A DNA stretch of 63,300 nucleotides, counting the filler, from Hyphochytrium catenoides (Eukaryota; Protista; Hyphochytriomycota), in NCBI GenBank assembly GCA_900088475.1. It is 9 parts of 9 records of this genome, joined end to end, with 100 filler letters (N's around TTAATTAATTAA, not from the genome) between each part and the next. Parts side by side here need not be neighbours in the genome. Positions count along the whole stretch, not along the records: positions 32,912 to 50,629 come from FLMG01000952.1; 8 more parts are not named here. One strand, written 5' to 3'. This document shows, one piece after another, positions 32,810 to 52,640 of this stretch. Position 1 is the stretch's first letter. Every line of letters begins with the position of its first letter. The position numbers and the translations under genes are program-made. The notes beneath the pieces were generated by a model. The model ran no database searches, was not told the DNA's origin, and saw only the letters and a list, made by a program, of their open reading frames with translations.

Positions 32810-35212
32810 CTNNNNNNNNNNNNNNNNNNNNNNNNNNNNNNNNNNNNNNNNNNNNTTAATTAATTAANNNNNNNNNNNNNNNNNNNNNNNNNNNNNNNNN
32901 NNNNNNNNNNNCTCTCTCTCTCTTTCTTTCTTTCTCTCTCTTTTTTTTCTCTCTCTGTCATCTCCCTTTTTCTCCTTGCCTTCTCTCACTTTCCTCTTGC
33001 TGTCTCTATCTCTGTTCTCATATCTTGCTGGTGAGAGCATACCATAGAAGAGAGGACCTTATTTGGCAGCGTAACGTTGTATAATAGATGACACATAGAG
33101 AGAGTAAGAAAGAGAGAGAGACGCTGAGAACTTAAGGTAGAGAGAAGCATAGCCGGCCCTCTCTCAGTCTATCTCTCCCCTCTCTTTCAGTGCGAGGAGA
33201 AACAGCACTATATAAATGCGAGGGACACTTATTAGACTAGCAGCGCCGACCTCTCTTCTCTTTCAGTCAACAGGCTCAAAGCCCCAGGTGATCTTCTTCA
33301 TTGGCTGTCCACTACTGCTGATCCCTTGTCTCTGCAATTCTCTTCTTCTTCCTTCTCTCCTCCTTGTTCAGATCTCTCTTCTTTCTCCTCTCCCCGTTTG
33401 CTTGATAGTTTGAGCTTATCCTCTCTCTTTGTCATCACTCTCTCTTTCAACGAAGTCTAAGCCTTTGGCCTGGCCCACACTTCTGTTTCTTTCCCATCAT
33501 CATTTTGCCCGCGAACCATTAGTCGGGTGTGTCACTGAGAGCTAAGCTACAGAGTCTACGGCCTGTATGGGATGACCCTCCTAACCTGCTAAACTTTGCC
33601 GTGGTTTAGGAGAGTAGGAGGCGTCTGCATGTGGCAAGAGCCACGCACGCGCATAAGCAATCGAGAGGAACATCCTCCGAGCCATTGTTCAAAGTGGAGA
33701 ACGACCTACTTCTTCACGATGAAGCTAGTGCAGCTAGCAGAGCTCTACTTGTGAGTTTTCTTTCACTACGATAGACATAGAGCTTATTATGACGATCATC
33801 CAAGCTGCAGGAAGACAGTGACGTCCTACCGCCAGAGCGGCCGGTCGAGCCAGCTTTCGCACCTACATCGCTCCTTCATCATCTACACAGAAGGTTGAGA
33901 TAATGCTCTAACAAATTGACCGGGTTAAGGATCAACAGGACGACGATGGATTCTTCTCGTCTACTTAGACGCCACAACCAGCTCATGATGCCGTTTATCT
34001 AAGGAGTTTCCCTACCGTCGACATCCTTCTAAGAGAAGATCTTTGCTTCTCCCACCACCTGAGCCTGTCTGTGCACCTTTAACCGAAGATGACACTGCTG
34101 GATGAAGGAAAGAAAGAGAGAAAGAAAGCAAGAGTCAGCAACCTTTAGGTGCCTTCCTCATCAACAACGATAAGGTCTTAGGTCCTCACACCCGAAGACA
34201 TGAGAGCGGTCATCCCTGGGGGAAAACGTTTGAGCACTTATCCTTACTTCTTCTATCGCTTCTCACTCTTTCAGATCCTTCTCTTCTATGAGAGTGCGAC
34301 AGGTGTGCTTCGTCTTCTTTCTCTTCTGCTTCATCCTACCTCATAGCTCGCTTGGGGATATCTATCGAGAGCCAAGACCGTAGTTAGCTCTTGTCTCTTC
34401 AATCACTTCTTTTCGATCTCCATTTCTTCTTCTTCCTCTTCGTCTTCCTCCTTTCGCTTTATTCTTGATCTCCTCGTTTACCTTTCTCCCTTCCGTCCTA
34501 GAGTACTTGTTCTTCCTCTTCATCTTGTTTCTTTTACACCTTCTCCTAGCTTCCCTTCTTTTGAGAAGTGAAAAGTTTAAGCACTTATCCTGACCTTCTT
34601 CCTTTTTCATAGCTGCTCACAGATATAAATCCTTCTCTTCTGGAAGAGCGTAGCTCTAATCTCTTCATTCACTTCTTTTAGTTCTTGGTTTCTTACTTTT
34701 CTGCTTCTTTCTTCTTTCACTATTCTTTATATCCTGGTTCCTTTATTAGCTATCTTTCCTCTTTTCCATCCTCCAGTTGTTCTTCTTCTTCTTCTTCTTC
34801 TTCTTCTCCCTTTATTATATCTTCTCCTATCTTCACTTGTCCCTCATCTTCTCTTTTTCTTCAGCAATTTCCTCTTCTTCTCTTCCTCGTCTTTCTTTGT
34901 TTCTTTCTTCGTGGTTAACCTCTTTTTGCCTTCCTTCCTCTTCTTCTTCCCGTTTCATATCTTCTCCTATCTTCACTACTTAACTTCTTCTTTCGGTCTT
35001 CTTCCCCCTTCTTTCTCTCCTCTCTCCGTCCAACGCCTTCGCTTCTCTCTCCTTCTTCCTCTTCTCTCTTTTGATAAGAATTCTTCTCTTCTTTGCTCAC
35101 TCTTTGTTTCTTTCTTCTCTATATAAAAGTACGTGTGAAAGTAGTATAAGTGTTCTATTATTAGCTACCTACACAAAGGAAAGAAGAGAAGGAGTAGAAA
35201 AACAGGAGAATG

Positions 35213-35260
<48 letters not shown>

Positions 35261-35348
35261 AGCAGGGCCAAAAGCTACGATTATCAATAGATACTAGAAG
35301 TGACGATGAAGAGAAGAGAAGAGAGCACTTCCTAGAGATAAAAGGAAG

Positions 35349-35890
35349 AGTTCAACTAGAATTCTTCTTCCTTTGTCGATAATGAGGGTGGAGAGGAGAA
35401 CGTGTTGAAGACGAGTCCAGGACTCTGTAGCCCTTGTCTCTTCTTCTTCTTCCTCTTCCTCTTCCTCTTCTCCTTCTCCTTCTCCTCTCCTTCTCCTTCC
35501 CCCTCTTGTTGTTGTTCTTCTTCTTCTTCTTCTTCTTCTTCTTCTTCTTCTTCTTCTTCTTCTTCTTCTTCTTCTTCTTCTTCTTCTTCTTCTTCTTCTT
35601 CTCTTCTTCCTCTTCTTTGCCTTCTCCTCCTCCTTCTTCTTCTTCTTCTGCTTCTTTTTCTTCTTCTTCTCTTCTTCCTCTTCTTCGCCTCCTCCTCCTT
35701 CTTCTACTTCTTCTTTCTTGTTCTTCTTCTTTTTCTTCTCTTCTTCCTCTTCTTCTTCCTCTCTTCTTCTTCTCTTCTCTTCTTCTTCTTCTTCTTCTCC
35801 TTTTTCTTCTCTTCTTCCTCTTCTTCTCTTCTTCTTCTCTTCTCTTCTTCTTCCTCTTCTTCTTCTTCTCTTCTTCTTCTCTTCTTCCTT
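35349..35890. repeat. Dispersed repeat copy 2 followed by a long (TTC)n microsatellite
   Basis: Same head as the 29254 copy; near-perfect (TTC)n at about 35515-35600, degenerate to about 35890. Confidence 0.7.
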
Positions 35891-36143
35891 TCTAAACTTC
35901 CTCGTGATTAAAAACTCAAAGAAGGAAGAAAAGGATTATTGATATTTTTCAAAGGAGACATTACGAAGAGTCACAACAGTGCAGCAATTCTATAAAAAGC
36001 ACACATGAAAATATTAGGTTTTTGATGAAGTTGTCATAGTTCTTACCTCTATCCCTGATGTATGCGTATTTTCAATATGGGTTTTATCGCCATAAAATAC
36101 TCTCTTTCAGGTGAAAGAAACGGAGATACGACAAATTGAGGTA

Positions 36144-36241
36144 CAGTAAATGGCAGAAGGCAGAAGGTGTCATATCGCAAATCCTCAGCTTTATCACTCA
36201 TATTATTTGAAATAATACCAATAGGTTGCTGACATTTACTG
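36144..36241. mobile_element. Very small MITE-like element (98 bp) with CAGT termini
   Basis: Left end TA|CAGTAAATGGCAG; right end CTGACATTTACTG (reverse complement CAGTAAATGTCAG, 12/13 match). Internal palindrome TATTATTT-G-AAATAATA. The right flank is AA rather than TA. Confidence 0.5.
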
Positions 36242-37728
36242 AATTGGAAAATGTATGGAGCTGCTGCGGGTGTTGTGATGTGTTTCCTATGTGTCTCACC
36301 CTGACTGATCTTTACCTGATCCTACACCGGTCGGGTATCGTCTATATATACATGCCTGGCGAACTTATCTAAACATATTCCAGACAGCAGACAAATGCAC
36401 CTGTAGCTGGCTCTCTGCTAAGATCTCTTTTTGGCTCTGTCTGATGGCTAGAATATCTCACCACACCTCTGTCTCTGTTTAGTCAACACCTTTCGCCCTC
36501 AAAAATTGAGCGTATATCTTGCCCTCTGTCTCTCCCTTTATAAGCTTTCTCTCTTGATCTTCCTCGTCACTTGAACAGCTTCATTCCCCGGCTGTGTCTC
36601 TTCTGTTTGGCGTGTCATCACAAAGGAAAGGACAGAGGAGAGAAAAGAACACCAGAAACGACTAAGGTGACTCTTCCTCCTTAGAAAGGGAAGAGATATA
36701 CAAGTAACAGAGAGCGAGAAAGAGAGAGAAAAAGAGAGAGAGACAGAGAGAGAGAGACACAGAGAGAGAGACAGAGAGAGAGAAAGAGAGAGAGACAGAC
36801 AGAGAGAGAGAGGGAAAGAATTAGGGAGTGTGTAATAGGAAAGAGAAGGGCTGAAGAGAGAGAGAGAGCCGACTTGACGAGAGAAAGAGAGAGTTGAAAG
36901 TGAGCAAAGAGAGAGAAAGAGGAAGAACTGCAGAGAGAGTGGGGGGAGAGAGAGAAAGGAGAGAGACAGAGAAAGAGAAAGAGAGAATGCAGTGGGAGTA
37001 GAGGGCACCGCTTCATAGCACAAAAGGGAACAGAAAGATACAAGGGGGACAAAATACAGCGGGGAAGATACATCTTGCATAATAAAAGAGAGGGGAGAAG
37101 AGGGCTGAAGTAAGGCCCTAATGGAGATGGAAGAGAAAAGGAGAGAGAAAAGGAAGGAGAGAAAGAGTAAGATAAAAAGAGAGAGAGAGAAAAAGAGAGA
37201 GAAAGAGGAGAGAGAGAGAGAGAGAGAGTTGCCAAAGCTGAGAAGAGGTGGAGAGGTTCTCAATGGAGGACATTGCGGCACGGTAGGCTTGCACAGACGA
37301 CGGAGGAAGGGGCCGACAGAGGTTGTGCCTGCGGTCTGCAAATGAGAGAGAGAAAGCGAGAGAGAAGAGAAGAGAGAGAGAAAAAAAAAAAGGAGAGCGA
37401 TGAAAACCTGCAGAAGGAGGTTGATATTGGCAGTAGAGACAGCAACAACAGAGTCCCGACTGTGGAGGGGGACATGCTGCGATGACAGTGGGCAGATGTC
37501 CTCTCTTCATCGTGTCTCCCTCTCTCTCTCTCTCTCTTCTCTATATATCGTCTTCCATTGATGAGAAGGCAACCCGTCAATGTTGTCCAGTCTGTGCATC
37601 TTTGTCCGCCCTTCTCCTGACCTTCACTACGGCTTGCATTCGTCAGGACGACTGCAGGATGCGAAGCGAAGAACCTTTTGGATTCCCTATCCGGAGCTCT
37701 TGCTCTTCTTCTCCTTCCTTATATTCAG

Positions 37729-37766
<38 letters not shown>

Positions 37767-38481
37767 CCTCTCTCTCTTTCTCCCTCTTGTCCTCCCAAAC
37801 AACAGTGGCAGCGCAATATCCGCCCAGACAGTGGCAGATCAAGCGCATTGATGGTACACTACGTCCGTTCACTGGTCACAAGCACCAGCAACGACGAGTG
37901 GAAGCTAATGACAACCTTCATCCTGCCCGCGTTAACTGCACGATCGTACCCTCTCTCTCTCTCTCTCTTCTCTCTCTCTTTCTCTCTCTCTCTCCTTTTT
38001 AGTCTTCTCTCTCTCTCTCTTGGCTTCAAGGTACTCACAAATCTTGCTCCTTCTATGTCCGTCTTGCTCAATTGGTGGTCATCACTTGATTTCCTCGTCT
38101 TGATTGATGGCCCGAGTGCCCTTCATCCTTTTTCTTCTCTCTCTCTCTCTCTCTTTTCCTCTCTTCTCTCGCCAATCTCATCCTCCTCTCAGCAGTAAAG
38201 AACCATTTTGAAGAAGCCCACACGCATCATCTCTTCTCTCTTCTCTTCTCACTTTCCAATCTCCCACTTTGGAGTCAACCAGCCCAACAACCCAGAGCAG
38301 AAAGGAAGCTTGTGAGCGAAGGAGAGTCTCCCCCCTCAGGAACCAAGGCGCAATCCTTAAACCCACTGATTGCCCTCGACGGTTCGGCTCTTCCATCCTC
38401 TCTTCTTTCTCTCTGTCTGTCTGTCTCTCTCTCTCTCATCAGCAAGGCTAGACCACCAACAACAGAACAAAGAAAGGAATC

Positions 38482-39731
38482 ATGAAGCTCACCACGACGT
38501 CCAGTCTTCTCTCTCTTATCATTCTCTCTCTCTCTTCTTCTCTCTCCCTCCCCACCGCAGAAGCCCGCTTTGGCCAACAAAATCCGCCAGTTCTTGATGA
38601 GATCAGACAGTGCGCGCCTGCGGGAACAGCAGGCGACATCACCGGGCAACTCTCTACTTTTGCTGGAGAAGCCGTCTCTACTCTTCTCGGAGGCGCGCAG
38701 GAGTGCGCACAGCAGGACCAGGCCGACAAGATCATAGACTTTGCTAAGGCGAACAATCTGCAGGGCTGCGTCGCACCTGCTGTGGCTTTCAGACAGGCGG
38801 AGAAGAACGTGGATCCGTTCGCCAATGCTAATCCTTGCTCCAAGATCTGCGACAGATTGCCAAAGATGAGGAGCTGCTAGGGTCTGTGCAAGCCTTTGAC
38901 CCGGCGTGCAACTTGGACCAGTTCTTTGCTGATAATCCTGATCAAAAGGCCAACTTTGACCTGCAGAAGGGCGCCGCAGGAGCTGGAGGTGCGGCAGTTG
39001 CTAACAATCTAGCTGCAGAAGAAGGAGGAGAAGACGCAGCCGATCTAGCTGCGGATGGCGCCGCCGGAGCAGCTGCTGCTGAAGATGCAGCGGCAGCCGC
39101 TGACGGTGCAGCAGCAGCCGCAACAGAGGCTCCAGCTGCCGCAGCGGCAGGCCAAGGCAAGTTGGCAAAGGTCAAAGACATCATTGCCAAGGTCAAGCAA
39201 GTGAAGGGGAAAGTCAAGGATATCATACAGAAAGTCAAAGCAAAGAAAGCTGCTGCACAAGACGCTGCAGCAGCGACAGAGGCCGCGGTAGCAGCACAGG
39301 ATGCTGCTGATGCTGATGCTGTCACAGAGGCCGCTGCTGCTGATAACGCAGCCGCCGCTGATGATGCCGCTGCGGTGACGGAGGCCGCCGTAGCTCAGGA
39401 CGCTGCTGCAGCCGCTGAGGCTGTGACTGAAGCCGCAGCCGCAGGAGAAGCAGCCGAGCAAAAGAAAGGTGGGAAGCTTGCTAAGGTGAAGAACGTGCTG
39501 AAGGGTCTCAAGGGTAAACTGGCCAAGCTGAAGGGCCTCAAGGGCAAGCTGGCCAAGCTGAAGGGCCTCAAGGGCAAGCTGGCAAAGCTGAAGGGGCTCA
39601 AGGGCAAGCTGGCAAAGCTGAAGGGACTCAAGGGCAAACTTGCCAAGCTGAAGGGGAAGCTAGGAAAGCTGGGGAAGCTAGCGAAGCTGGCTAAGCTCGG
39701 AGGAAAGCGTGCTCTCCGTTCTGAGGTCTAA
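38482..39731 (+). CDS. Secreted protein: Cys-containing RFGQ domain, acidic Ala-rich spacers and cationic amphipathic Lys/Leu segments; one frameshift at about 38862
   Basis: The ORF track splits it into 38482-38880 and 38835-39731. One extra A in CCAAAG gives a continuous ..KICDRLPKDEELLGSVQAFDPAC.. (about 416 aa). Signal peptide, 6 Cys, and repeat copies that differ only at synonymous sites. Confidence 0.8.
39501..39650 (+). repeat. Coding 30-bp tandem repeat x5 encoding KGLKGKLAKL
   Basis: Units start at 39501, 39531, 39561, 39591 and 39621; all differences are at third codon positions. Confidence 0.95.
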
Positions 39732-40964
39732 GAGAGAAAAGAGAGAGAAGGGAGTTCCTCTCTCTTCTCTTCTCTTCTTTCTCTCTCTTGAAGTTGGTTC
39801 ACTTTTTTCACTCTTCATCAGGTCTTTTTCCATCATCATCAAAACATCTCTTTGTTTTTATACCAAGATCTATGGCAGAGAGAGACAAGAGGCTGGCCTG
39901 CTTTCCCCTTTCTTTCCCAAGAAAGAAGAAAGTTCAGTCACTCTTCCCCTTTCTCTCTCTTTGTCCATAGAGAAGAAGAAGAAGAATAGTTATCTTCTTG
40001 CTTTTGCTTCCTTCTGTCTTTTACTAAGAANNNNNNNNNNNNNNNTTAAAGCCTTGGCTTCGAACTCTTTCTAGACTGGCTTTCCCCTGATGTGCTGATC
40101 TTGTCTTCCTTCTCACTCATTCTCTCACTCTCTCTCGGCTTGTTTTCTTGTCTGTCTCTCTTTCTACCTTCCTTTCATCTCTGTCTTTCTCCCATGCACC
40201 AGCAGAAAGAAGAGTCGACCGAGTGCATATTCTTGCTGCTGAGAGCTTCTTTCTTGGGTGCTCCAAATGAGGAGAAACATCATCATTCTTGTGCAGGTAG
40301 TAGGAGAGAGAGAGAGAGACAAGGAAGAGAGAAGAAAGGCAAAGAGAGAGAGTGTTATAAAAAGGAACGATGTCAGAGGAAGGTAAAGAGAAAGAGAGAG
40401 AAGAGATTCAACGTAATAAAGCCGCTGCCTCATTAGAAAGGAAGACCGAAAGAAACAAGTTATTGGCTCCTCTTCTGAAAGGTCTGCGTGCTTCCTTTGC
40501 TTCGGCTTTACTCTAGATCTCTCTCTTCCTCTTTGTCTCTTTTTTCTGTCTCTCTCTCTCTTTGTCTCCATGTCTCTTTCCTACTTCTTTTTTGAGAAGG
40601 ATAAACGGCGGAGGGTTCATCAGACTCTGCTCTCTTTCTCTGCATAGTCTCTCTCTGGCTATCTCTCTCTCTCTCTCTGGCTCTCTCTCTCTCTCTCTGG
40701 CACTGTCTCTATCTCTGGAACTCTCTCTCTCCCTCTTTTATACTCTCATCTCTCTCTGTGAGCCCGAATCATTGCCGCAGTGCTACGTGGGAAATGTTGT
40801 TGGTCTATTAGAGAGGCTGGAAGCTAAAAGACTGCCAAGAAACGCTTCTTTCTTCTTCTTCCTTGTCTCATCCTGATCTTCTTCTTCTCTCACACCAGCC
40901 AAACGCTCCTCAAGGATCCTTATCACTTTTGTTCTTCCCTCTCCCATCGTTCTCTCCCTCACTT

Positions 40965-41027
<63 letters not shown>

Positions 41028-41085
41028 CTCTCTCTCTCTCTTCTGCTCTTAGCTCTTCTGTCCAAGAGAGAGACACTTGCTCCTA

Positions 41086-43029
41086 TTACTGAGGCGCTAC
41101 CTTGACGATGCTGCTGCTAGAGTTCCGTCTCAGACTGCCGTTCTTCTGTCTAACGTACCGATTGTATGGCTCCAGCAGCATCCGATAGACTTCCTCCTCC
41201 ATCGGGCCGAAGAAATCATCAGATGGAGAAGAGGCAGAGGAAGAGAGAGCGTCAATCTTCCCCAGAATCGCGTTCCGCAAGCTCTGCACGACGTTGATCT
41301 CATACTGAGAGCCCACTGCCACGTACAGAGCACCTATCTCCTTAATGATAGCGTCTCTCTTCTCTCTCTTCTCTTCCCCTTTCAACCTCTCGACAGCTTG
41401 GATGAAGAGAAGATTCTCCACGCAGAACTCTTTCACGGGATACTTCTTGAAGCTCTGCGCTGTCTCCCGTTGGACGAGAAGAGCACGGAGCTCTGCTGTG
41501 GATCTCACAGTCCCGTGTCCAACATGATGGTGAGAAGAAAGAGAGAACGCGCCGTTGACTGGAACTCTCTTCTCTTGTTCACTCTCTCTCTTCTCTTCTC
41601 TCTCTCTTTCGTAGGACAATCTGACAGGGCTCACCGTGGCGTACCACATATACGTGAGAGAGGCTCCAACATAGGCAAACTGCCCGATAGAGAAGGCATT
41701 CTCTCTTGCGTCCAAGGGCAAACCTGTGGCGGCTGTGGCCATCGAGTTCAGAGGCAGTCCCATGGAGAAAAAGAAGAAGATCTGCTTCCAGTTTTCACTG
41801 AGATTAAAGGCGTCGTCCATGTTCCGGATGAGGAAGGCGAAGATGGCGTTGAGAGAGAGAAGAGACCACCAAAGCACGCGGAAGAGGACCTGATTGATGG
41901 AGAGAGAGAGAGAGAGAGAAAGACAGGCGTCCGTTTAGTAGACAGAAGAGCAGAAGACACGACGAAGAAGAAGAAAAGTGGCGAGAGAAGAGCGGCTTCT
42001 TTCACCTTTGAGAAAGAGGAAAGGACAAAAGTGAAAGAGAGAAGGAAAACGCAAGGAGGAGGGACAGGCATTTCCTTGGGAGAGAAGAAAGGGGTGTAAC
42101 ATGAAGAACAGTGATTACTCAGCGAAGAGAGAGAGAGAGAGAGAAAGAAGCGAAAGAGAGAGAGAGAAAAAAGAAGCGTAAGAGAGAAAAGAAGAGAGAG
42201 AGAGAAAAGAAGCGTGAGAGAGGAAAGAAGAGAGAGAGAGAGAAAAGAAGAGAGAGAAAGAGGACGAGAGAGGAGAAAAAGAGAGAGAGAAGAGGAGGGA
42301 GAGAGAGAGAGAAAGGGAGAAAGGGAGAGAGACAGAGTGAGTTGAAAATGTGGCAAAAGTGGGAGGGAATACGCAGAACTCACTCCTCCAGCCTCTGCCC
42401 TGTAGATCAGGCACTCCGCATCCCTCAGCTGTGCTCCCAGGTCCACGCCTCCCACTGAGAGCTGCACAGCAGGGACAATGAAGGTAAGGATGCCTCCCAA
42501 CAGAAGCATTCTCTTCAAGAAAGAGTCAGACACAAGGAAGGTATGGGACGTAAACCAGTCTCTCTTCTCTTGCTGTTGCTTCTTCTTCTTCTCTTCTTCT
42601 TCTTCTTTCCCGGCAGTAGCCGCATTCTTCTCTTTCTCTCCTTCTCCTCGGTGTAGATCTTCAGCTCTCGTGCCTTGCTGCCTGGACATAGAGCGCTGCA
42701 GACTGTAGATGAACCAGGCGCGGAAGAGCTGCAGCGCCGCGCCGCAATAGAAAGGGAAGAGATCAGCCCACGCCAGGAGAATGTACAGCCAACAGGGACA
42801 CTGCGGGGAGATGATAGGGATTAAGAGAGAGATGACATAGAGACTGGAGCCCAGCTGCGTGGGTGATGGAGAGAAACGCTGGCGTGGCGTTGACGGGAAA
42901 GACGGATCTTCTTAGCCAAAGCAGGTAACAGAGGATCGGGCCGGAGATGCAGACAAAGACGAGAAGCGTCACAGCCAGAGGCAGAGCCCAGGAGTCGCTA
43001 GCATCGATGAAGGCTGCTGTCTTTGTCAT
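41086..43029 (-). CDS. 7TM-RGS protein (multi-pass membrane domain plus C-terminal RGS domain); one frameshift at about 42850
   Basis: Exon 43029-42384 (frame switch near GCTGGGCTCC), GT-AG intron 42383-41890, exon 41889-41086. TM region: LWLRRSVFP, PCWLYILLAW..LFRAWFIY, DDAFNLSE. RGS domain: FKKYPVKEFCVENLLFIQAV, LYVAVGSQYEINV, FGPMEEEVYRML..PYNRY. Confidence 0.82.
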
Positions 43030-43684
43030 GTTCTCTCTCTCTCTCTCTCTTTGTCTCTTTGCTCTCTCTCTCTCTCTCTCTCTCAGCAAGGTTGAGCTCT
43101 GTAAGGCTTATGAGTAGCTTTCTTCTCCTCCGCGGTCACTCGTCACTCATCCTGTCTTTTTCGTCTCTGCCCTCGCGTTCGTTCTGAAGACAAAAGCTTC
43201 ACTCTCTGCTGTTTGGACGGTGGTGGCTTGGCCGTCTCTTCTTCTTCTTCTCTCTCTCTCTCTTTCTTTCTCTCTTCTTTCCTCTAATAGTGGAACGCTT
43301 GGGGCAAAGGAAAGAGCGGGAGCGATTGAGGAAGAGATGGCGGTCAAGGAAAGAGAGAAACCACGGAGGTCAAGAGAAGAAGAGAGATCTACGGGGAATA
43401 AGGAGGAAGAGACAGAGTGAGGGTTTATCCTAGGAAAAGAAGTAGAAGGAGGGAGAGACAAGATATGCTTTGGGGCCAAGTTATCATCAATAATTCCTCT
43501 CTCTTTCCTTTCCTCTCTCTTCTCTCTCTCTCTCTCTTTCTTCCTTCCCGCGGGCCGCCTCTTCTTTCTTCCGTCAGCCTATCTTTCTAACGCCGTTACT
43601 GCTAAGTAATAGTAGGGAGGACCTTCCTCCTACTCTCAACCTTTACCAATAGTTGAGAGAGAGAAATGAAACGGAAAGAAAGGG

Positions 43685-43740
<56 letters not shown>

Positions 43741-45015
43741 GACAGACAGAGAGACAGACAGAGAGACAGAGAAAGACGGAGACAGAAGACACAAGGAAGG
43801 GAGAGAAAGACAGACAGACAGGGACAGACAGAGACAGAAGACACAGAGGGAGAGAGAGACAGACAGAGACAGAGAGACACAGAGATAAATAGGGAGGAGA
43901 TCGGAAGAGAGGCAGGACACGGGAGAGAGAACAGGAGAGAGTGACAGAGAGATGAGAGAGACAAGAAAGGAGAGAGAGACAAGCAAGAGAGACGAAGAGG
44001 ACGAAACGAAGGAGAGAGACACTGAGGGTCTTGTAAGGTGTTGCGTGGGGTCGCGTGTCCCTTCACCACCGTCCCTTCACAGGTCTTTCTCTCTCTCTTC
44101 TCTCTCTCTCTCTTCTCTCTCTCTTTCTTCCTCTCTCTCTCTCTCTGTCTCTCTCTTTCTCTCTCTGTCTCTCTCTTTCTCACTCTCTCTCTCTCTCTCA
44201 GCCTCACCTTCTCTAAGTGTCTCTCTTTCTCTCCCTGTCTCTCTCTCCTCTCTCTCTCTCTCCCTCCGTGGGGCTGTTAGACACACTCAGGAGAGACAGT
44301 TACGGCCGCTGTCTTCCGTTGCGCTGGACCTTCCCCTCTGTTTTGCCTCCCACATTGTCTGTTATTATCTATGGCCATTCAGCAGTTAAAGGGATCAAAA
44401 GGGTCATGATGGCTGTCAAGGATATAGATGTCTCGTCTTGAGATGTCTTCTCTCTCTCTCTTCTCTCTCTCTTTCTCTCTTGCTTTCTCTCTCTCTTCTC
44501 TCTCTCTCCCGCTGACGACTGCTGGGTTTCGGAACTCCCTCTGTCTTCCTTGTTCTCTCCTTTCTTGCTCACCTTCCACCTTCCCTTTTCCCCTATCTTT
44601 GGTCTCTCGTCAGCTCCCAATCTCCCACTCTCTTTTCTTCCATCACCATCCCTCCCAAGCTCTCTCGCTCTCTCTCGCTCTCTCTCACTCTCACTCTATC
44701 TCTCATCCTTTTCTGTCTCTCCTGAGTCCATGGGACCCTATCTCTCTCTTCTCCCTCCGTCGCCGTTTCCCTTCTTCCATCCTATTACTAATACATATTT
44801 CCTTGGACTGTCCCAAGGTGGAGAGGAGAGAGAGAGAGAGACACAGACGTTGTGCTCTCCCTGCTCTTCTCTTTTTCTTTCTTTCTCTCTCTCTTTCTTC
44901 TCACTCACACCGACATCCCCCCGCCTGGCTCCCTGCTGACAGGCGTCACTCGCCTAGGACTTCTTTCTGGGTAACGATGGGTCATGGCTCCTTGAAGGCT
45001 GTGATCTCTTACAAC

Positions 45016-45059
<44 letters not shown>

Positions 45060-45458
45060 GAGAAGAAAGAGAGAAAGACTGGCCAGTTATCCGTTATATA
45101 CTCCTCAGCCTCTTCTCTCTCCCTCGGCGGATGATGAAGGAGGGCTGTACCCTTCTTTTCTCCTCTCACCAGCCAAAAGGCTCGACGAGAAGAGAGAGAG
45201 AAAAAGAGGAGAGAAGAGAAAGAGAAGAGAAATCGGTTCTCACTTCTCTTTCCCTCGCATCTTCGAACTTCCTTCCCTGCTTCTCTATCGTCCAAATTTT
45301 TGCCTCAACTGACATCTCTTTCTTGCTTAGAAACCCTAGCACTTGGGCCTCACGCTCGGCGCCGTATTGACGTCTCTCTCCCTGCTCATTTTTCTCTACT
45401 TTTTCTCAACTGCATTGTCCTCTTTTTCTCAATAACGTGAGCTCTGTCTCTGTCTGGA

Positions 45459-47625
45459 TGATGATGCAGTTCAATGAGTCGCCGCTGCATTGGAAGATCC
45501 TCATCGCGCTGCAGTTGCTCTGGCTCTTCAGCACGCCAATCCGGAACGTGTATCTCTATACTTTGACAGTCAACTTCCTGCCTGTGACCGTGCACAAAGG
45601 CGCCAATGTAAGCTTCATTTCAGAGACAGAGTTCTTGACGTGCTCGGCTGTCTGGGCGATAAAAGACGGCCTTGGTGGGACGTTTGCCCGCATCCGACAC
45701 GGGAGCTGTGACGCTGATAGCTCTGGACAGTACCTGGTGGCTCATCCTCATGGATATCTGACGAACATGCTGAAGAGAGTGCTCTCTCTCTCTCCTGAGG
45801 CTCAGGTCAAGGTTGAGATTGACGTCCCAGAGCTCAAAGCTGCGTACTCTGCCTATCTTGGCAATGTCCTGAAAGAGTCCAACTATCTCTCGAAGGTAAA
45901 CAAGACCATGAACGATCCTCTCTCGTCGGCGCCGCTCACCTACTGGGGCAACTACCAAGGCTTCTATCTGGACGCCAACAAGGAGGTGGAAAGACTGAAA
46001 GAGGTCGTCCGGAGACTGAGATATGTGAAGACCTGGGAAGATCCGACCACGTCCTACGGCCGGCCGGTGATTCATGACAATGTCTTCCGTGTGGCAAGCT
46101 GCATGAATGAGACTACCGCCGCGGCGGCTGGTGGGGAGAGAGACTGCAAAGATCTTCTTCCCATGCAGGACATCGTGCGGAGCTTCGTGGGAACGGTGGA
46201 AGGCTACGCTTTCAATGCAGCGCTGGGCATGCCGTCTCTCTGCCAAGAGAAGAAGATGCTGCTAGATACACAGCGAGAAGCTTCTGCTTTCAATCCCAAT
46301 CTTCCAACCCCCCAAACGTTCCTTGCAGTCCTGATAGATCACTGAGCAGACGTCTCTCTCCTTTGCTTTCTCCTCTTTCTGCTGCATTCTCCTGCTCCGC
46401 TTTCTACAATCCCTAGGTCCTGGGCCTTGGTGCCGCTAACGAGGTGAGTATGAGCTCAGTGATCAAGGCTTGTCTCTTCGGACAGACGCAAAAGTGCCAG
46501 AACATCGTGCAGTACTCAAGGGACAACGTAGAAGCCGTGTACGCGTCTCTCAACTACCTTCTCATCTTCGTCCAGCACGCTCTATGGGCGTACGTCATGG
46601 CTTCTCTCTTCTGCAAGCTGCAGATGCTCAGAAAGTGCATCGCTGCCGGCATTGTCACCTCAAGCGAGCTATGGACCTGCAGGATGGGCTGTGCCCTTGA
46701 CATTTACTGTCAGCTGTACTACGCACTAGGCGCTGTTGGCCGCCTGGCTGTAGCAATGCCTATCGTTCTGAGCCTGGCCAACATGATCACCAGGACGTGC
46801 GATGCGCTTGCATTTGGAGAGGAGAGCCTGATAACCCAGTATAAAAGCTTGTATGAGGGAGCTGCGGACCACGAAGATGGCAGTCAACAGGGAGGAGAAG
46901 GGGGAGGAAGTAGTAGTCGTCTCAAGTTTGGAGAGGTGCTGAAGCTTCTCTTCTGGCTTGCGTTCTACAGCTCTCTGGCTGTGGAAGTCCTGACCACACC
47001 GAACGCCGTGATGGACCTTGCTTGGTACCGGCAGCGCTATCCCAGCATCATCCGCTCTTCCTTCCGCTTCGTGCTGACCTCTCTCTCTATGATAGCCTCT
47101 GCCACGCTTCTGCGCGGGACCACGCTCTTTGGCGTCCCAGTAGACAGCAACCTCTTAGCCATTGTTATCTTTATGCTCCTGGTGCAGGCCACTATAGGAC
47201 GGAACAAGGTTCTGAGGAAGAAGTTTCCAATCTCTGGCGCTGTGGGCGATTATCTATCGGCTGAAGGCGTTAAAGACGCCTTCCTGGTCGATGCTTCGCT
47301 GCAGCATCAGGAGACTGAGGGAAAGAGAAGAATAGGCACGAGGTTCGAGGTATTGGTCGCCTTTGCAGGCGTTTATCTATGGCCTCAGAGCTATGGAGCA
47401 GCCGTTATAGGCCCCAACTCGCTGCGCCACGCCGATGACGCCGATGAAGCAGCAGCAGGAGCGGGAGGAGGAAGCAACGGGTCAGAGACGGCCGTCTCTT
47501 CGTCAGCTGGAACTGCTGCTGAGACTAAGGAGCCAACCAGGACGGATGGAGAAGGGGAGAAACAGAAGAAGAAGGAGGCACCAGGGTCATCGTCGTCTTC
47601 TATAAAGGCAGGTTATCTCTATTAG
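45459..47625 (+). CDS. Multi-pass membrane protein of unknown function, probably two exons
   Basis: ORFs 45437-46345 and 46444-47625 are separated by a pyrimidine-rich stretch ending in CCCTAG (acceptor about 46416, phase 0). The donor is uncertain (possibly GCA|GTCCTG at 46328). One N-terminal TM, a Cys-containing luminal region, then about 5-6 TMs. Confidence 0.65.
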
Positions 47626-48483
47626 TGAGTCTAACTAAGCCCAAAGGCTGAATATACTGAGCGAGAAGAGCATCCCAGCCCGTAGATAGTCCTATAGCTC
47701 ACCATCGTCTAGCTGATAGCTTGCGCTTCTCGTCTTATGATAGAGCTCACAGTTATTCCTTGCAAGAAGCTGGACGATCCTTTGGCGTTGGTTGCAGGTC
47801 TTTCGCTTTGTTCGGCTGGCTATCAGACGCTTGAATCCTTTCTCTTCCAACTGCGCCCAGCAGTGTCACGGCTCGATCGAAAAACCTGTGTACCGCTGCC
47901 TCGGGCCCAGCTTTGCCACTCTCTCAAAAAGAGCCTCAGCCCTCGTCGTAGAGCTCAGTGCTTGGCCATAATGCTGAAAAGACGCACTTCCTCATGTGTA
48001 GAGCTATGGGTCTAGGGATGGAAAAGGATAGAATCCTTTCTGAACAGCTCTGGGAAGCAGAGAGTGGTGCCGTTCTTGAGCAGAAAGGAATGTATCTCAG
48101 AGAGTGTGAGGCGTTCCTAGTGAAGATATAGCTCCTGCTCTCCCATGCTAAACGTGGACGAAGGACTAGCACTTGCTACTGTCAGGCCAGCTCCCAACCC
48201 CATCCACACCAGGCCGGACACAGATTGGTCTTGTGAGGCCATGAAGACGACGAAGAGATAGTGGCCGGTAGCTCCTAACCAGAGAGCAGAGGCTCACGGC
48301 AGCTGCGAAGGCTTGCAGGGAGCTGATGATGAGATGACAGATGCGTTCTATAGCTCTTCCTGCGGCAGTACAAAGTGGCAGGATGAGATAATGAAGTTCC
48401 CTACTAAGTACTATAAAGCCTAACTATGCCAAGCTATGCAGGTGAGCTGCAGAAGACGAAGAAGAGGGATGTATGCTCCAAGG

Positions 48484-48514
<31 letters not shown>

Positions 48515-48584
48515 CAGAGAGAGAGACAGAGAGAGAGACAGAGGGAGAGACAGAAAGAGAAAGAGAGAGTGAGACAGAGAGAGT

Positions 48585-48649
<65 letters not shown>

Positions 48650-49629
48650 AGAAAGAGGGAGAGAGAGACAGAGAAAAGAGTGACAGGCGCTCATTCGCAG
48701 AGTCACCAAGAGATGCATCGTCCTAAAGGACTGAATCGACAGGTATAAATGGTGGTCAGGTGGGAAGGGAAGTCGGGAAAGAGAAAGAGTTTCACCAGGA
48801 GAAGCAAGAACATACTCCTCAGAAGAAGGACAGAAATATAGATAAAGAGAAGAGTTCTCAACCTCTCACCGCCTGCCTATCTGTGGACATGAGCCTAGCC
48901 TGCAGCTGAGACCGGATAGTGGCCTAGTCAGTAGAGCAACGAGTGTTAGGCAGTAGACGCCGCTGTTAGGTGCAGGCTCTGGCAGAATAAGCTGAAGAAG
49001 GCTCTCTCTATAGACGATGTCCTGACCACTCCGAAAGTGACGACGGTCACAACCATGCATGCCCCTTAACCTGTTAAATGCCGTGGTTCCCAAGCTCATG
49101 GCTGCTGTTTCCATGGGATTCTATTGAAGGCTGCTCTCTTGATGAAGCTGTGGCGACACCCGTTAGCACCTTGCAAGGACATGCCGATGGCACAATAGCA
49201 ACCTCTTTGGCTCTAATGCCACTCGTTCGGATGCTGCCAGGAGCAGCATGTGAAGGGCAGAGAAGCTTATCCTGAAGATGTGCGTACGAGAGCCTCTATT
49301 CATCCTAGTCTCAACGGGCTACCACGGTGGGGCGTGTTTCTCCTATTATTATAAAGGTAGCTAGTAGAGGGCGCGCAAGAGCCAGAGGTCTACACATTGA
49401 AGCCTGATGAAGAAAGGAAGGGCAGCGATCTAGAGCTCGAAGGGCAGGCAACCGGTGACGTGCGCCACAGCTTCTTACCTACTAGGACTAGGCTTAGCCT
49501 TTGAAAGGTATGGCGGCGTTATCTTTTTACTAGTGCTATTGAAGTCAGTGCGCTATCTGTCAAAGAGGAGTCATCCATGTGGACAGCAGATCGGGCTCAA
49601 GATGGCTGGTAAGACTTCCTACTTCTCAT

Positions 49630-50589
49630 TCAAGGGCTTGCACCGCAGCTGCTGCAGTATTGACCAGTTCCATTGCTGATCCTGCATCGCGTGCAGAACC
49701 AGCCGTCAATCAGGGAAAGCGCCATTTGTTCCCCCTCTGCCTGTATCTTAGCTTGTATGTAAGCTGCGTCCAGTCTCTCTCTTTGACCTGCAGCAATGAT
49801 AGCGTTGAACTGCTGGGTCAGCGCGTTGTCTCGTGATAATGGCATCATTTCCCTCTCCAGCTTGAAAGGAAGCTGGATCTTTAGCCGGTTGCAGGTGCTG
49901 CTGTACTCTCCGAAGGACTCGTCCGGGTTCATCAGTAAAATGTAGAAGAGAAAGTCGTACGCTCCTTTCCGAGTGAGTATAGGGATACGTGCCTGCGTGA
50001 CCACGCCAGGGATGGTCACCAAGCCCAAGACGGGTGTTGGCGGTCCTGTTTGCGTTTGAATGACAGTGACATACTCAATATTCAGTCCTTTGTAGAGGGC
50101 CTCCAAGTCCTCGGGAGTGCCAGTGTCTCCCATAGCATTATTATACTTCTGTGGCTCCCAGTAGCCGCTTCGATAAGGCGACAGTGACGCGTCGACGGCA
50201 GTGAAAAAGATGTCAAAGAACTGGTTGAATAGCGCCGTGGGTCGGCGGTGACTGTCGACAAAAGAAGAAGAAGGCCCGGAGTACTGCTGAGCTGTTGCAC
50301 GCAGAGGATGGCTGCTACTATTATGATGTTGCTGCTGGGTTGGTGGTGGTGGTGGATACGCCATCGGCGCCCCGGCAGTAGCAGCAGGAGCTGCAGCCGA
50401 AGTAGTCACGCTAAGTGCAGGCGGTGCTGAGGGGATGATGGTGGTGCTAGCGCCGGCCGCTGCTGATAGAGAGGCGTTATTCTTGGCCACCCTCGTCCCA
50501 CAGTTCGGGCAGAAGTTGGGCACCGCATTAGCAGCTTCTCCTCCTGCTGCTGCTGCGACGCTGTATGAGCAGGACTGGCACGTCCACAT
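49630..50589 (-). CDS. Protein with N-terminal zinc ribbon, Pro/Ala linker, conserved-looking central domain and C-terminal RanBP2-like zinc finger
   Basis: Intronless, 319 aa. WTCQSC..NFCPNCG; FNQFFDIFFTAVD..GYWEPQKY..IPILTRKG..NPDE; WFCTRCRISN..YCSSCG. Confidence 0.8.
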   Translation of the reverse strand: MWTCQSCSYSVAAAAGGEAANAVPNFCPNCGTRVAKNNASLSAAAGASTTIIPSAPPALSVTTSAAAPAATAGAPMAYPPPPPTQQQHHNSSSHPLRATAQQYSGPSSSFVDSHRRPTALFNQFFDIFFTAVDASLSPYRSGYWEPQKYNNAMGDTGTPEDLEALYKGLNIEYVTVIQTQTGPPTPVLGLVTIPGVVTQARIPILTRKGAYDFLFYILLMNPDESFGEYSSTCNRLKIQLPFKLEREMMPLSRDNALTQQFNAIIAAGQRERLDAAYIQAKIQAEGEQMALSLIDGWFCTRCRISNGTGQYCSSCGASP

Positions 50590-52640
50590 GACGACGATGA
50601 TAATAACCTCTTCTTCTGTTGCTGACGGCNNNNNNNNNNNNNNNNNNNNNNNNNNNNNNNNNNNNNNNNNNNNTTAATTAATTAANNNNNNNNNNNNNNN
50701 NNNNNNNNNNNNNNNNNNNNNNNNNNNNNCGCAGAAAGACAGAGAAACAGGAGACAAAGAGTGAAAGAGACAGAGAGAGAGAGAGAGACAGAGAGAGATG
50801 CGAGAGAAGTAGAGAATTTGCAAAATTGTATTAAGCAAAGAAGAGAGAGGGCGGTTGAGGCCTGGGTTAGAGTCCCTACCGTCACAGACGAGGAGGAGGT
50901 CGCAATCACCGTCAGAAAGGTGGGAGACAGAGGAAGAGTAGAGAGAGTTGTCTCTGCCTCTCTCTCTTCGGCGGACTAGAACTGAACCTTTTTGAACATC
51001 GTTCATCGTCTTCCCCTCTAAGGTCCCTACATAGCAAGAGTAGATGGGGTTAGGGAGCAGAAAAGTTGTGGGTTCCTAGAGGGATGACCCGCAGAAGGAC
51101 TCGACAGGGTAGGCATAGAAGAAAGAAAGAGAAAGAGAGAGAGAATGAGAAAGAGAGAGAGAATGAGAAAGAGAGAGAATGAGAAAGAGAGAGAGAGAGA
51201 GAGAGAGAGAAANNNNNNNNNNNNNNNNNNNNNNNNNNNNGAGAGAGAGAGAGAGAGAGAGAGGGGAGAGTGGGAAAGAGAGAGATCGCTGGAGAGAGGT
51301 TACCTATTTGGAAGGGAGCAGAGGACCACAAGCGGCTCCGAAGCGCCAAGAGAGGCTAGTCTCTCCCTAGCCCGGCCTCTCCCTTCTAGACAACAGACAT
51401 CGCCCGAGGACGAGGCAGAAGCCGGGTAGAGGAAAGGTCCATCTTTATCTCCTCCAGTCTCCGTCCGTAGGCTGCTAACCTTCGGCTCCTGCAGCGACGG
51501 TGGACGGAGGGGAGCCCGGCCTGTGCGTCGGACGGAAGGTTACTCTCCATCCTCCTTTCTCCTTCTTCCTCTCTTCGCGCTCCTGAGCTCCAGGCTGCAC
51601 TCCAAGCTCTTGTGCCTCTGTCTGTGTCTCTCTCTGTTCGCTGTCTCTCTCTTCTGTCTCTTATCATCACTCTCTCTCTCTCTTCTGTCTCTTATCATCC
51701 TTCTTTCTCTCACTCTCTCTGTCTGTCTCTTTGTCTGAAAATCTTTACCCGGAGATCTTCAGAATCTCTCACCCAGCCCTATAAAATCCATCGTACGTAC
51801 ATGTAGTGCCGAACTTCGTTGTGAATATACTCCGTAGTAGATTATTTAGCGTTGCTGACTGTACAGATTGCCGTTAGCCGCTAACAGAGCAAGACAGATA
51901 ACCTCCAGGAGCGGAAACAACCAAACGTCATCACCACTCGCTTCTTTCTGCTGAAGCGCAGCAGCGCTCCTACCGCTGGTGCCGCTGCTGCGCGCCGCCA
52001 CCACCAATCGTCGTCACCTTCTCCCGCCCCTGCAGTCGCCGACGTCCTCCTACTTGCCGGTACTTCTGCTTCTTTCTATTACTCCGAGAGAGGGTTATAC
52101 TACTGTTTCTGTGCAACCCTTGAAGAATGTAAAACTCTCCGATGAAAAGAGAACAACTTCGTCAACCTCCTCCTCTTCGCTTCTTCTTCATCATCAAGAG
52201 CACTTATTAGCTCTTTTTTTTTTTGGCAGCAGAAGCCGACATATTGTGTCCCATCATGCGTCAATTACTTCCCGGATGAGGTTCTAGAGTAAGTACGTTT
52301 TTGAGAAAGAAACTTCCATGATGCTGAAAAGCCCTGCGGCCATGGACGCGTCATCAAACTTTGCGGCGGGCAAATTGTGGGTAAGAATGTCCCCAAACAC
52401 ACGGCGGCATCAGAACACCAGGTTCACGGTGAATTTTGAGCATGGAGTCGCACTTATTGCCTCCTTTTTCATTGAGCTCTGCAATGATGGCAACGAGGAC
52501 GGTGGCGGCTGCAGGAGCTGAAGGAAGTGACAATAAGGATGATCGATAATACTTCTTCACCGGGAGGCAGAACAAAGCAACAACAGCCGCGTTAGAACGA
52601 CGCTCCCCTGCTGATGGCGGCGGAGGGGTTGCTGTATGTA

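Follow-up and report, generated by a model that had tools for sequence, protein, structure and literature searches.

The window is a stretch of 63,300 nucleotides from Hyphochytrium catenoides (GenBank assembly GCA_900088475.1), made of parts of nine genome records joined end to end, and all positions follow the numbering of this whole stretch. Our subject is a locus at 38482-39731, on the plus strand of the part taken from FLMG01000952.1 (32,912 to 50,629), which appears to encode a secreted protein with a conserved head and a long tail of alternating acidic and basic blocks. All elements quoted in the initial annotation, which had taken the locus for a precursor of antimicrobial peptides, were found there on the plus strand, in the same order and at the same coordinates. 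The ATG at 38482 is the only one across the 416-codon reading, and an in-frame stop lies 30 nucleotides upstream. Further upstream a CT-rich pyrimidine tract was read directly at 38385..38440 (+), in the promoter or 5' leader region; CT/GA-rich non-coding DNA is widespread in this piece, which makes the tract weak as evidence for a promoter. The start codon and a predicted signal peptide occupy 38482..38565 (+; residues 1-28). The leader is S/L-rich and hydrophobic and ends with AEA before RFGQQ, the junction being ...PTAEA followed by RFGQQNPP. Leaders of homologues, when aligned to it, end with A-x-A before RFGQE, in agreement with the signal peptide proposed initially.

The head follows in two parts. 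The first part (38566..38865, +; residues 29-128), supported by phmmer and the family alignment A1, is read in frame 1, holds five of the six Cys and contains two synonymous allelic differences. The second part (38868..38969, +), read in the second frame, comprises 34 residues, ELLGSVQAFDPACNL...DLQK, with the sixth Cys; it is about 90% identical to the homologue P0002, and the family motifs ELxG..QxQDP cover this stretch. After the signal peptide the head thus amounts to about 135 residues with six Cys and a net charge of -7, and the six-Cys domain of about 130 residues that the initial annotation began at ARFGQQ was recovered. The remaining 253 residues of the mature chain (388 residues, net charge +11) form the tail. 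Acidic block 1 (38970..39155, +) has 62 residues, mainly Ala, Gly, Asp and Glu, with a net charge of -10. Basic block 1 (39156..39248, +) has 31 residues rich in Lys, Val and Ile, GKLAKVKDIIAKVKQVKGKVKDIIQKVKAKK (GKLAKVKDII...KAKK), with a net charge of +10 and KK at its end. Acidic block 2 (39249..39458, +) has 70 residues of Ala, Asp, Glu and Thr with a net charge of -15 and approximately four TEAA...AV periods. Basic block 2 (39459..39728, +), with 90 residues and a net charge of +33, is composed largely of Lys, Leu and Gly (34 K/R, 23 Leu, 17 Gly); it starts with QKKGGKLAK..., continues through five exact KGLKGKLAKL units and closes with KGKLGKLGKLAKLAKLGGKR-ALRSEV before the stop codon TAA (39729..39731, +). 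The five units are encoded by tandem 30-nucleotide repeats at 39501..39650 (+), for which Tandem Repeats Finder gave a period of 30, 5.3 copies and 93% match. The closing GGKR (39699..39710, +), read directly, contains the only Lys-Arg of the protein and stands six residues before the stop. In frame +2 the stretch 39459-39700 encodes a Q/A/G/E-rich peptide with a composition like that of the acidic spacers, and the K/L repeat may have arisen through a frame change in linker-type sequence.

The single chain of the initial annotation stands in so far as all its segments are present, but in the window they are split over two frames by a one-base break near 38865. Frame 1 is open from 38482 to 38880 (132 residues, five Cys, stop at 38880). 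The second frame is open from 38835 to 39731 (298 codons) and contains no ATG, and both frames are open together only at 38832-38880. The break itself was placed at 38865..38867 (+) from the frames, the contigs and the homologues, as a difference of one base in length from other runs of the same species. For this comparison, Logan contigs from four runs were set against 38300-39900. Contigs of X2, another sample of the same species with a depth of about 340, and of X3 have one extra base behind 38865, which gives a single open reading frame (ORF). X1 (depth 23), which may be the data set behind the assembly, shows the form of the window. P0002, the best homologue, stays colinear through the break and places exactly one residue against the X with which our scripts bridged this spot; search and fold tools were given the two pieces separately. 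Candidate GT..AG pairs in the right phase exist, but an intron was rejected, since the runs differ by a single base, no splice joint at the break was seen in the contigs of the four runs, and homologues are colinear. For the same reasons the break is best taken either as a polymorphism of one base in length or as an error in the assembly or the reads, and not as an intron or a programmed event.

Substitution patterns speak for the reality of the gene. The five 30-nucleotide units differ from each other at five sites, all of them third codon positions, and the substitutions (at least seven) are all synonymous. Only 27% of the possible single changes in the units would be synonymous, and a set of at least seven with none other has a probability of about 1e-4 under neutrality. 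Read in the proposed frames, 10 of the 14 single-base differences between the window and X1, X2 and X3 are synonymous, and these occur on either side of the break. The four non-synonymous ones are divided equally between acidic block 1 and acidic block 2, and a length variant of 3 nucleotides is also located in acidic block 1. Judged by these patterns, the locus is a real, constrained gene, and the repeat peptide KGLKGKLAKL is clearly kept by purifying selection. A second place in the genome was noticed in this material, as a 10,253-nucleotide contig of X1 and a 1,151-nucleotide contig of X2 match 33 bases of the K/L repeat (39617-39649) with K/G/L-coding flanks. This place probably holds a paralogue whose repeat is similar.

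The head belongs to an unnamed family of secreted proteins. A phmmer search with residues 1-128 against 1.84 billion representatives returned 79 matches with E<=1e-3, six of them at <=1e-10, and the two best (1.7e-34 and 2.4e-33) are 63% and 61% identical to the query. Twenty representatives of the family were looked up; 14 had an organism name, and all 14 were fungal. The named members come from chytrids (Spizellomyces, Phlyctochytrium, Polyrhizophydium, Dinochytrium, Entophlyctis), from Blastocladiomycota (Allomyces, Catenaria, Paraphysoderma), from Olpidium, from Entrophospora (Glomeromycota), from the rust Austropuccinia and from the Agaricomycetes Panaeolus and Sphagnurus. Because all named members are fungal, the source organism is, as judged by its head family, a fungus, and the protist label given to the host initially is wrong on this basis. 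Throughout the family the mature chain starts with a fixed (R)FGQ[EQ]N, preceded either by a signal peptide or by a propeptide site, RR or KR, and most representatives show this junction. About half of the representatives reach it by way of the propeptide site, and in our protein it comes directly after the signal peptide. Among the invariant and near-invariant columns of alignment A1 are one Cys pair and the motifs C.QQD.AD.IID, AEKN and EL.G..Q.QDP. The protein from the window has the N-terminal similarity, the signal peptide with the (R)FGQ[EQ]N junction and the Cys pair of this family, together with its core motifs in the form ECAQQDQADKIID, AEKN and ICDRLPK-x-EELLG.

AlphaFold2 was run on the head of P0002 (residues 24-165, 61% identical to the target) with an alignment of 40 sequences. 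The model has six helices, with a mean predicted local distance difference test (pLDDT) of 89.5 and a predicted template modelling score (pTM) of 0.84, and the head from the window is accordingly predicted to be a disulfide-containing helical bundle. Pfam gave no match for the target or for ten homologues, a sequence profile search of the PDB with the head was empty, and Foldseek found nothing below E = 1 in the PDB for the P0002 head model. VIA-align, run against 48,161 chains, returned only generic helical bundles, the best with Z 6.3, a score that the tool itself rates as noise for helical proteins; inhibitors of invertase and pectin methylesterase from plants were among them with Z 5.1-5.4. 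In the ESM Atlas, searched by features and by shape, only unnamed fungal clusters came up, with template modelling (TM) scores of 0.72-0.74 by shape. A word search with the N-terminal piece in a length window of 73-231 residues gave no matches, and a metagenome scan with the N-domain as protein query gave 0 confirmed loci. A saposin/amoebapore-like or elicitin-like six-Cys domain was considered and rejected, as the Cys spacing does not fit and the family conserves only two Cys. From these comparisons, the head is a member of a widespread secreted fungal family that has neither a Pfam entry nor a structural match, and we regard it as the conserved working part of the protein.

The tail is of another kind. 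Its blocks carry net charges of -10, +10, -15 and +33 in order, eight residue types make up 92% of it, and its charged residues fall into 9 runs, compared to 35.9 +/- 4.1 in shuffled sequences, so that the acidic/basic alternation of the initial annotation lies well outside chance. Given the tail as a single sequence, AlphaFold2 returned two very long helices with pLDDT 75 and pTM 0.25, the helices of basic block 1 and basic block 2 having pLDDT 87-90 and about 86-89, respectively. The tail is thus predicted to be helix-prone without a fixed tertiary fold. A word search with the tail region 95-287 found no relatives, and Joint Genome Institute (JGI) metagenomes, scanned with a degenerate DNA pattern of the K/L repeat, gave 0 matches. 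Homologues keep the head and differ in the C-terminal half, where they have Cys modules and N/G/Q-rich or A/T/S-rich linkers; P0002 is still similar through ...TEAPAAA and goes on with two Cys-containing modules. Four homologues have a Lys/Arg-rich C-terminal stretch of their own, without acidic spacers or cut sites. It stands at the very end in P0013, P0061 and P0041, and P0051 is K-rich near the end, so a basic tail recurs as an appendage of this head. The tail is, by its sequence, a lineage-specific low-complexity extension grown by tandem duplication, an unusual design added to a fungal scaffold that can be recognised as such and accepts many different appendages. Type I antifreeze-like Thr periodicity was rejected for acidic block 2, where the spacing is 16-17 and not 11, as was collagen-like Gly spacing, the intervals being 3, 7, 3, 7. 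Glycosylphosphatidylinositol (GPI) anchoring was also rejected, the C-terminus not being hydrophobic. A basic motif, [KR]R-x(0,1)-L, was observed among the 12 C-terminal residues in 4 of 76 representatives (P0008, P0013, P0030, P0075) versus 0.25% of inner windows, the motif having been defined post hoc. The C-terminal halves sharing it are otherwise unrelated, and P0002 ends with ARSLRAN. The protein may thus have inherited its GGKR-ALRSEV end as a family feature, and the basic C-terminal motif may serve the family as a processing or sorting signal.

The initial annotation had seen in the basic blocks amphipathic helices of the KLAK type, released from a self-neutralised polyprotein at dibasic sites and amidated at the GKR. 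The likeness to (KLAKLAK)2 is one of composition, not of design. Indeed, the K/L composition does resemble that of designed membrane-active peptides (PMC7915940), but the order of residues does not follow it. Hydrophobic moments were calculated at 100 degrees and compared to 2000 composition-matched shuffles. (KLAKLAK)2 has a moment of 0.69. Basic block 1 reached 0.39-0.44 in windows of 11-18 residues (z +1.2 to +1.4), a value attained by 10-12% of the shuffles and so not significantly above them, while basic block 2 (90 residues) gave 0.30 and 0.21 in windows of 11 and 18 residues and 0.12 as a whole. Its core of 79 residues lies below the shuffle mean, with 0.19-0.28 in windows of 11-18 residues (z -0.6 to -1.0). 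In the repeat, Leu takes positions 3, 7 and 10 of 10, hence the hydrophobic stripe turns by about -80 degrees per unit, and periodicity peaks at 140-145 degrees.

The release sites fare no better. The full reading has no KR, RR or KK at the joints of the five repeats, at the border of the head with acidic block 1 or at that of acidic block 1 with basic block 1, which reads ...AAAAAGQ then GKLAK. The dibasic sites of the protein are KK after basic block 1, KK before basic block 2 (...AAEQKK then GG) and the one KR near the end. Kex2 requires Arg at P1, and KK is a poor site for it. The KR is therefore the sole canonical cut and would trim only ALRSEV. A polyprotein with dibasic sites is not supported. 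Amidation at the GKR is not expected either, since the head family is fungal and peptidylglycine alpha-amidating monooxygenase (PAM) is reported absent throughout fungi, chytrids included (PMC6529398). As for self-neutralisation, the idea that a pro-piece offsets the charge of its peptide has been put forward for defensin and frog peptide precursors (PMC7073735). The first pair of blocks follows it, with -10 and +10 cancelling exactly, but the second pair is unbalanced at -15 and +33. Overall the antimicrobial-precursor reading is weakly supported. The silaffin-like alternative raised along with it was dropped. Silaffins are Ser/Lys-rich peptides with phosphorylatable Ser from silica-forming organisms, whereas the basic blocks hold one Ser, situated in the last six residues, and the head places the gene in fungi. 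The other alternative, a cell-coat or adhesive polyampholyte, comes nearer than peptide release to the reading that we prefer.

We tentatively prefer to read the product as an intact secreted protein, in which the head is borne on a helical spacer with charge blocks and a polycationic tail holds it to anionic surfaces; secretion, the absence of processing and the binding role are what we infer, while the anatomy, the family of the head, the selection on the repeats and the polymorphic frame break have been shown. The protein would remain one chain and would not be cut into peptides. The +33 Lys/Leu/Gly tail, with the smaller +10 block, would act as an electrostatic anchor that keeps the head on anionic material outside the cell, be it polyphosphate, extracellular DNA, acidic polymers of the wall or the surface of microbes nearby. 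As spacers, the Ala-rich acidic helices would shield part of the charge while the protein passes along the secretory pathway, and the single KR near the end would perhaps be trimmed by a Kex2-type protease with removal of the last six residues only. We favour this reading because release sites are missing and Leu and Lys are not placed so as to form an amphipathic alpha-helix, and because the homologues are modular, some of them with basic tails on the same head. Several points weigh on the other side. The exact cancelling of -10 and +10, together with KK at two block borders, fits a charge-masked precursor, and peptides very rich in Lys and Leu can be membrane-active even without ideal amphipathicity. 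The anchor role of the tail is argued from its architecture. The copy of the reference strain is frame-broken and the tail may not be made there, and the RNA trace of the gene is limited to one soil metatranscriptome contig, identical over 95 nucleotides (38551-38645) and then diverging.

A charge-masked precursor would have its 31-residue and approximately 80-residue cationic segments freed by proteases, and these would permeabilise the anionic membranes of competitors. Cutting would take place after secretion or in the late Golgi, by Kex2 at the KR and by yapsin-like enzymes at KK or single Lys, and the acidic blocks would neutralise the cationic segments until release. We consider it rather unlikely. 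The predicted signal peptide, the KK after basic block 1 and before basic block 2, the KR near the end, the strong purifying selection on the repeat peptide and the helices predicted for the basic blocks are all consistent with such a precursor, but KK is a poor Kex2 site by textbook knowledge, cut sites are lacking between the repeats and at the first two block borders, and a large conserved head is odd as a pro-region when relatives carry C-terminal modules that are not peptides. Likewise, the alternation with its exactly cancelling first pair suits the charge-balance idea (PMC7073735), whereas basic block 2 with +33 is not neutralised by a spacer of -15. The K/L/A/G composition is like that of (KLAKLAK)n and (KLGKKLG)n (PMC7915940), whereas the helical moment is not above that of shuffles, 0.12-0.30 in basic block 2 against 0.69 for (KLAKLAK)2, and with PAM reported absent from fungi (PMC6529398) no amidation would follow. 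In its fullest form, the proposal is that a fungus, probably of an early-diverging lineage, makes a natural counterpart of designed Lys/Leu lytic peptides as a charge-masked pro-protein on the conserved secreted scaffold, from which basic-site proteases other than Kex2 would free polycations of 31 and roughly 80 residues that kill competing bacteria or other microbes. Such a precursor is not known to have been described in fungi, and the proposal is unlikely in our estimate.

The tail itself could instead be the material. Opposite blocks of neighbouring chains would then pair by coacervation or helical bundling, and the product would be extracellular matrix, a spore or cyst coat, or a glue. 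Block polyampholytes are known to coacervate, and Lys/Gly-rich proteins with acidic partners form marine cements. The blockiness of charge (9 runs where 36 are expected), the restriction to eight residue types in 92% of the tail and the long predicted helices with pTM 0.25 and no fixed tertiary fold point in this direction. However, the mature chain is unbalanced with a net +11, and the tail lacks Tyr/dihydroxyphenylalanine (DOPA), Ser-phosphate or Cys motifs for cross-linking. There is a single copy within the piece, and no relatives of the same design were found by the tail word search or by the repeat pattern in JGI metagenomes, all of which makes self-association doubtful. Finally, the gene could be decaying or neutral. 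The tail would then be a recent run-away expansion of a simple repeat within an Ala-rich linker, lacking a function of its own, and the frame break would already have made the gene a pseudogene in the strain that was sequenced. The break shared by the window and X1, the failure of word search and metagenome scans to find relatives of the tail, and the position of the non-synonymous allelic changes and the 3-nucleotide indel in the acidic spacers would agree with this. We regard it as improbable, as the synonymous repeat substitutions are expected at about 1e-4 under neutrality, 10 of 14 allelic differences are synonymous on either side of the break, the frame is open in two other data sets of the species, one of them at full depth, and the break is perhaps an assembly or read error.

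If the tail of an intact protein anchors electrostatically as we prefer to think, it shows how a widespread and unstudied fungal secreted domain is targeted to surfaces, and it offers a handle on the role of the head, for example by pulling down the wall contacts of the head. If the tail is released, cationic peptides in fungi would have a source and a type of precursor that are both new. In either case two findings hold independently. One is the unnamed secreted family, fungal in all named members, in which a fixed mature N-terminus goes with a confidently modelled helical fold but with neither a Pfam entry nor a structural match. The other is that selection clearly maintains the repeat peptide.

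Other features of the piece lie apart from this gene. At 41086-42911 (-) there is a gene with a regulator of G-protein signalling (RGS) domain (Pfam E 1.3e-11). Its coding sequence occupies two or more frames and therefore contains at least one intron. An ORF of 319 residues at 49630-50589 (-) matches DUF7514 (E 5.7e-07) and has flanking CxxC pairs like those of zinc ribbons. A word search found no relatives of it, and its nearest Atlas clusters are fungal with scores of 0.75-0.79, which are low and to be taken as leads only. Two adjoining long ORFs at 45437-46345 and 46444-47625 (+), without Pfam match, are possibly exons of one gene, and the latter resembles a multi-pass membrane protein. 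Long tracts of poly-T and of the (TCT)n type were noted at 35402-35911, as well as a 15-N assembly gap at 40031-40045. Intergenic DNA across 32912-50629 is rich in CT/GA dinucleotides, and its GC and AT skews flip sign in blocks of several kb.

Among known systems, the precursors of dermaseptin and magainin and the pro-pieces of defensins resemble the protein in the signal peptide, the order of acidic then cationic parts, the cancelling first pair and the Gly-Lys-Arg near the end. Unlike the amphibian precursors, to which it has no sequence relation, it has a folded head of 135 residues in front, lacks KR or RR directly before its cationic segments, and has segments of 31 and about 80-90 residues. 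These segments have no helical amphipathicity above chance, and the amidating enzyme is reported as missing from fungi (PMC6529398). Fungal KEX2-processed repeat proteins (KEPs) have, by definition, three or more repeats with KR, RR or KK sites between them (PMC6339444). The protein shares secretion, tandem peptide repeats and some dibasic sites with the alpha-factor, Rep1 and Ece1/candidalysin type of KEPs, but it falls outside the definition, since its five KGLKGKLAKL units are contiguous and all dibasic sites lie outside the array. With (KLAKLAK)n and (KLGKKLG)n it has in common the use of K, L, A and G and the strings KLAKLAKL and KLGKLGKL. Designed (KLAKLAK)n-type peptides follow a period of 7 residues (3+4) with a moment of 0.69, whereas the repeat described here has a period of 10 residues (3+3+4) and then of 3, with a moment of 0.12-0.30 at 100 degrees. 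The closest system is the RFGQ head family, exemplified by Spizellomyces punctatus SPPG_07501 / XP_016605146.1, Catenaria anguillulae ORZ31867.1, Panaeolus cyanescens PPR02626.1 and Entrophospora CAH1759143.1. Common to the protein and this family are the signal peptide, the RFGQQNP start, the Cys pair and an Ala-rich linker after the domain, together with the motifs LL..(A/G)..C.QQD.AD.IID, AEKN and EL.G..Q..DP. The protein differs from the members found in its tail of alternating acidic segments and K/L repeats, in place of which Cys-rich modules, stretches rich in N/G/Q or short K-rich tails occur in its relatives.

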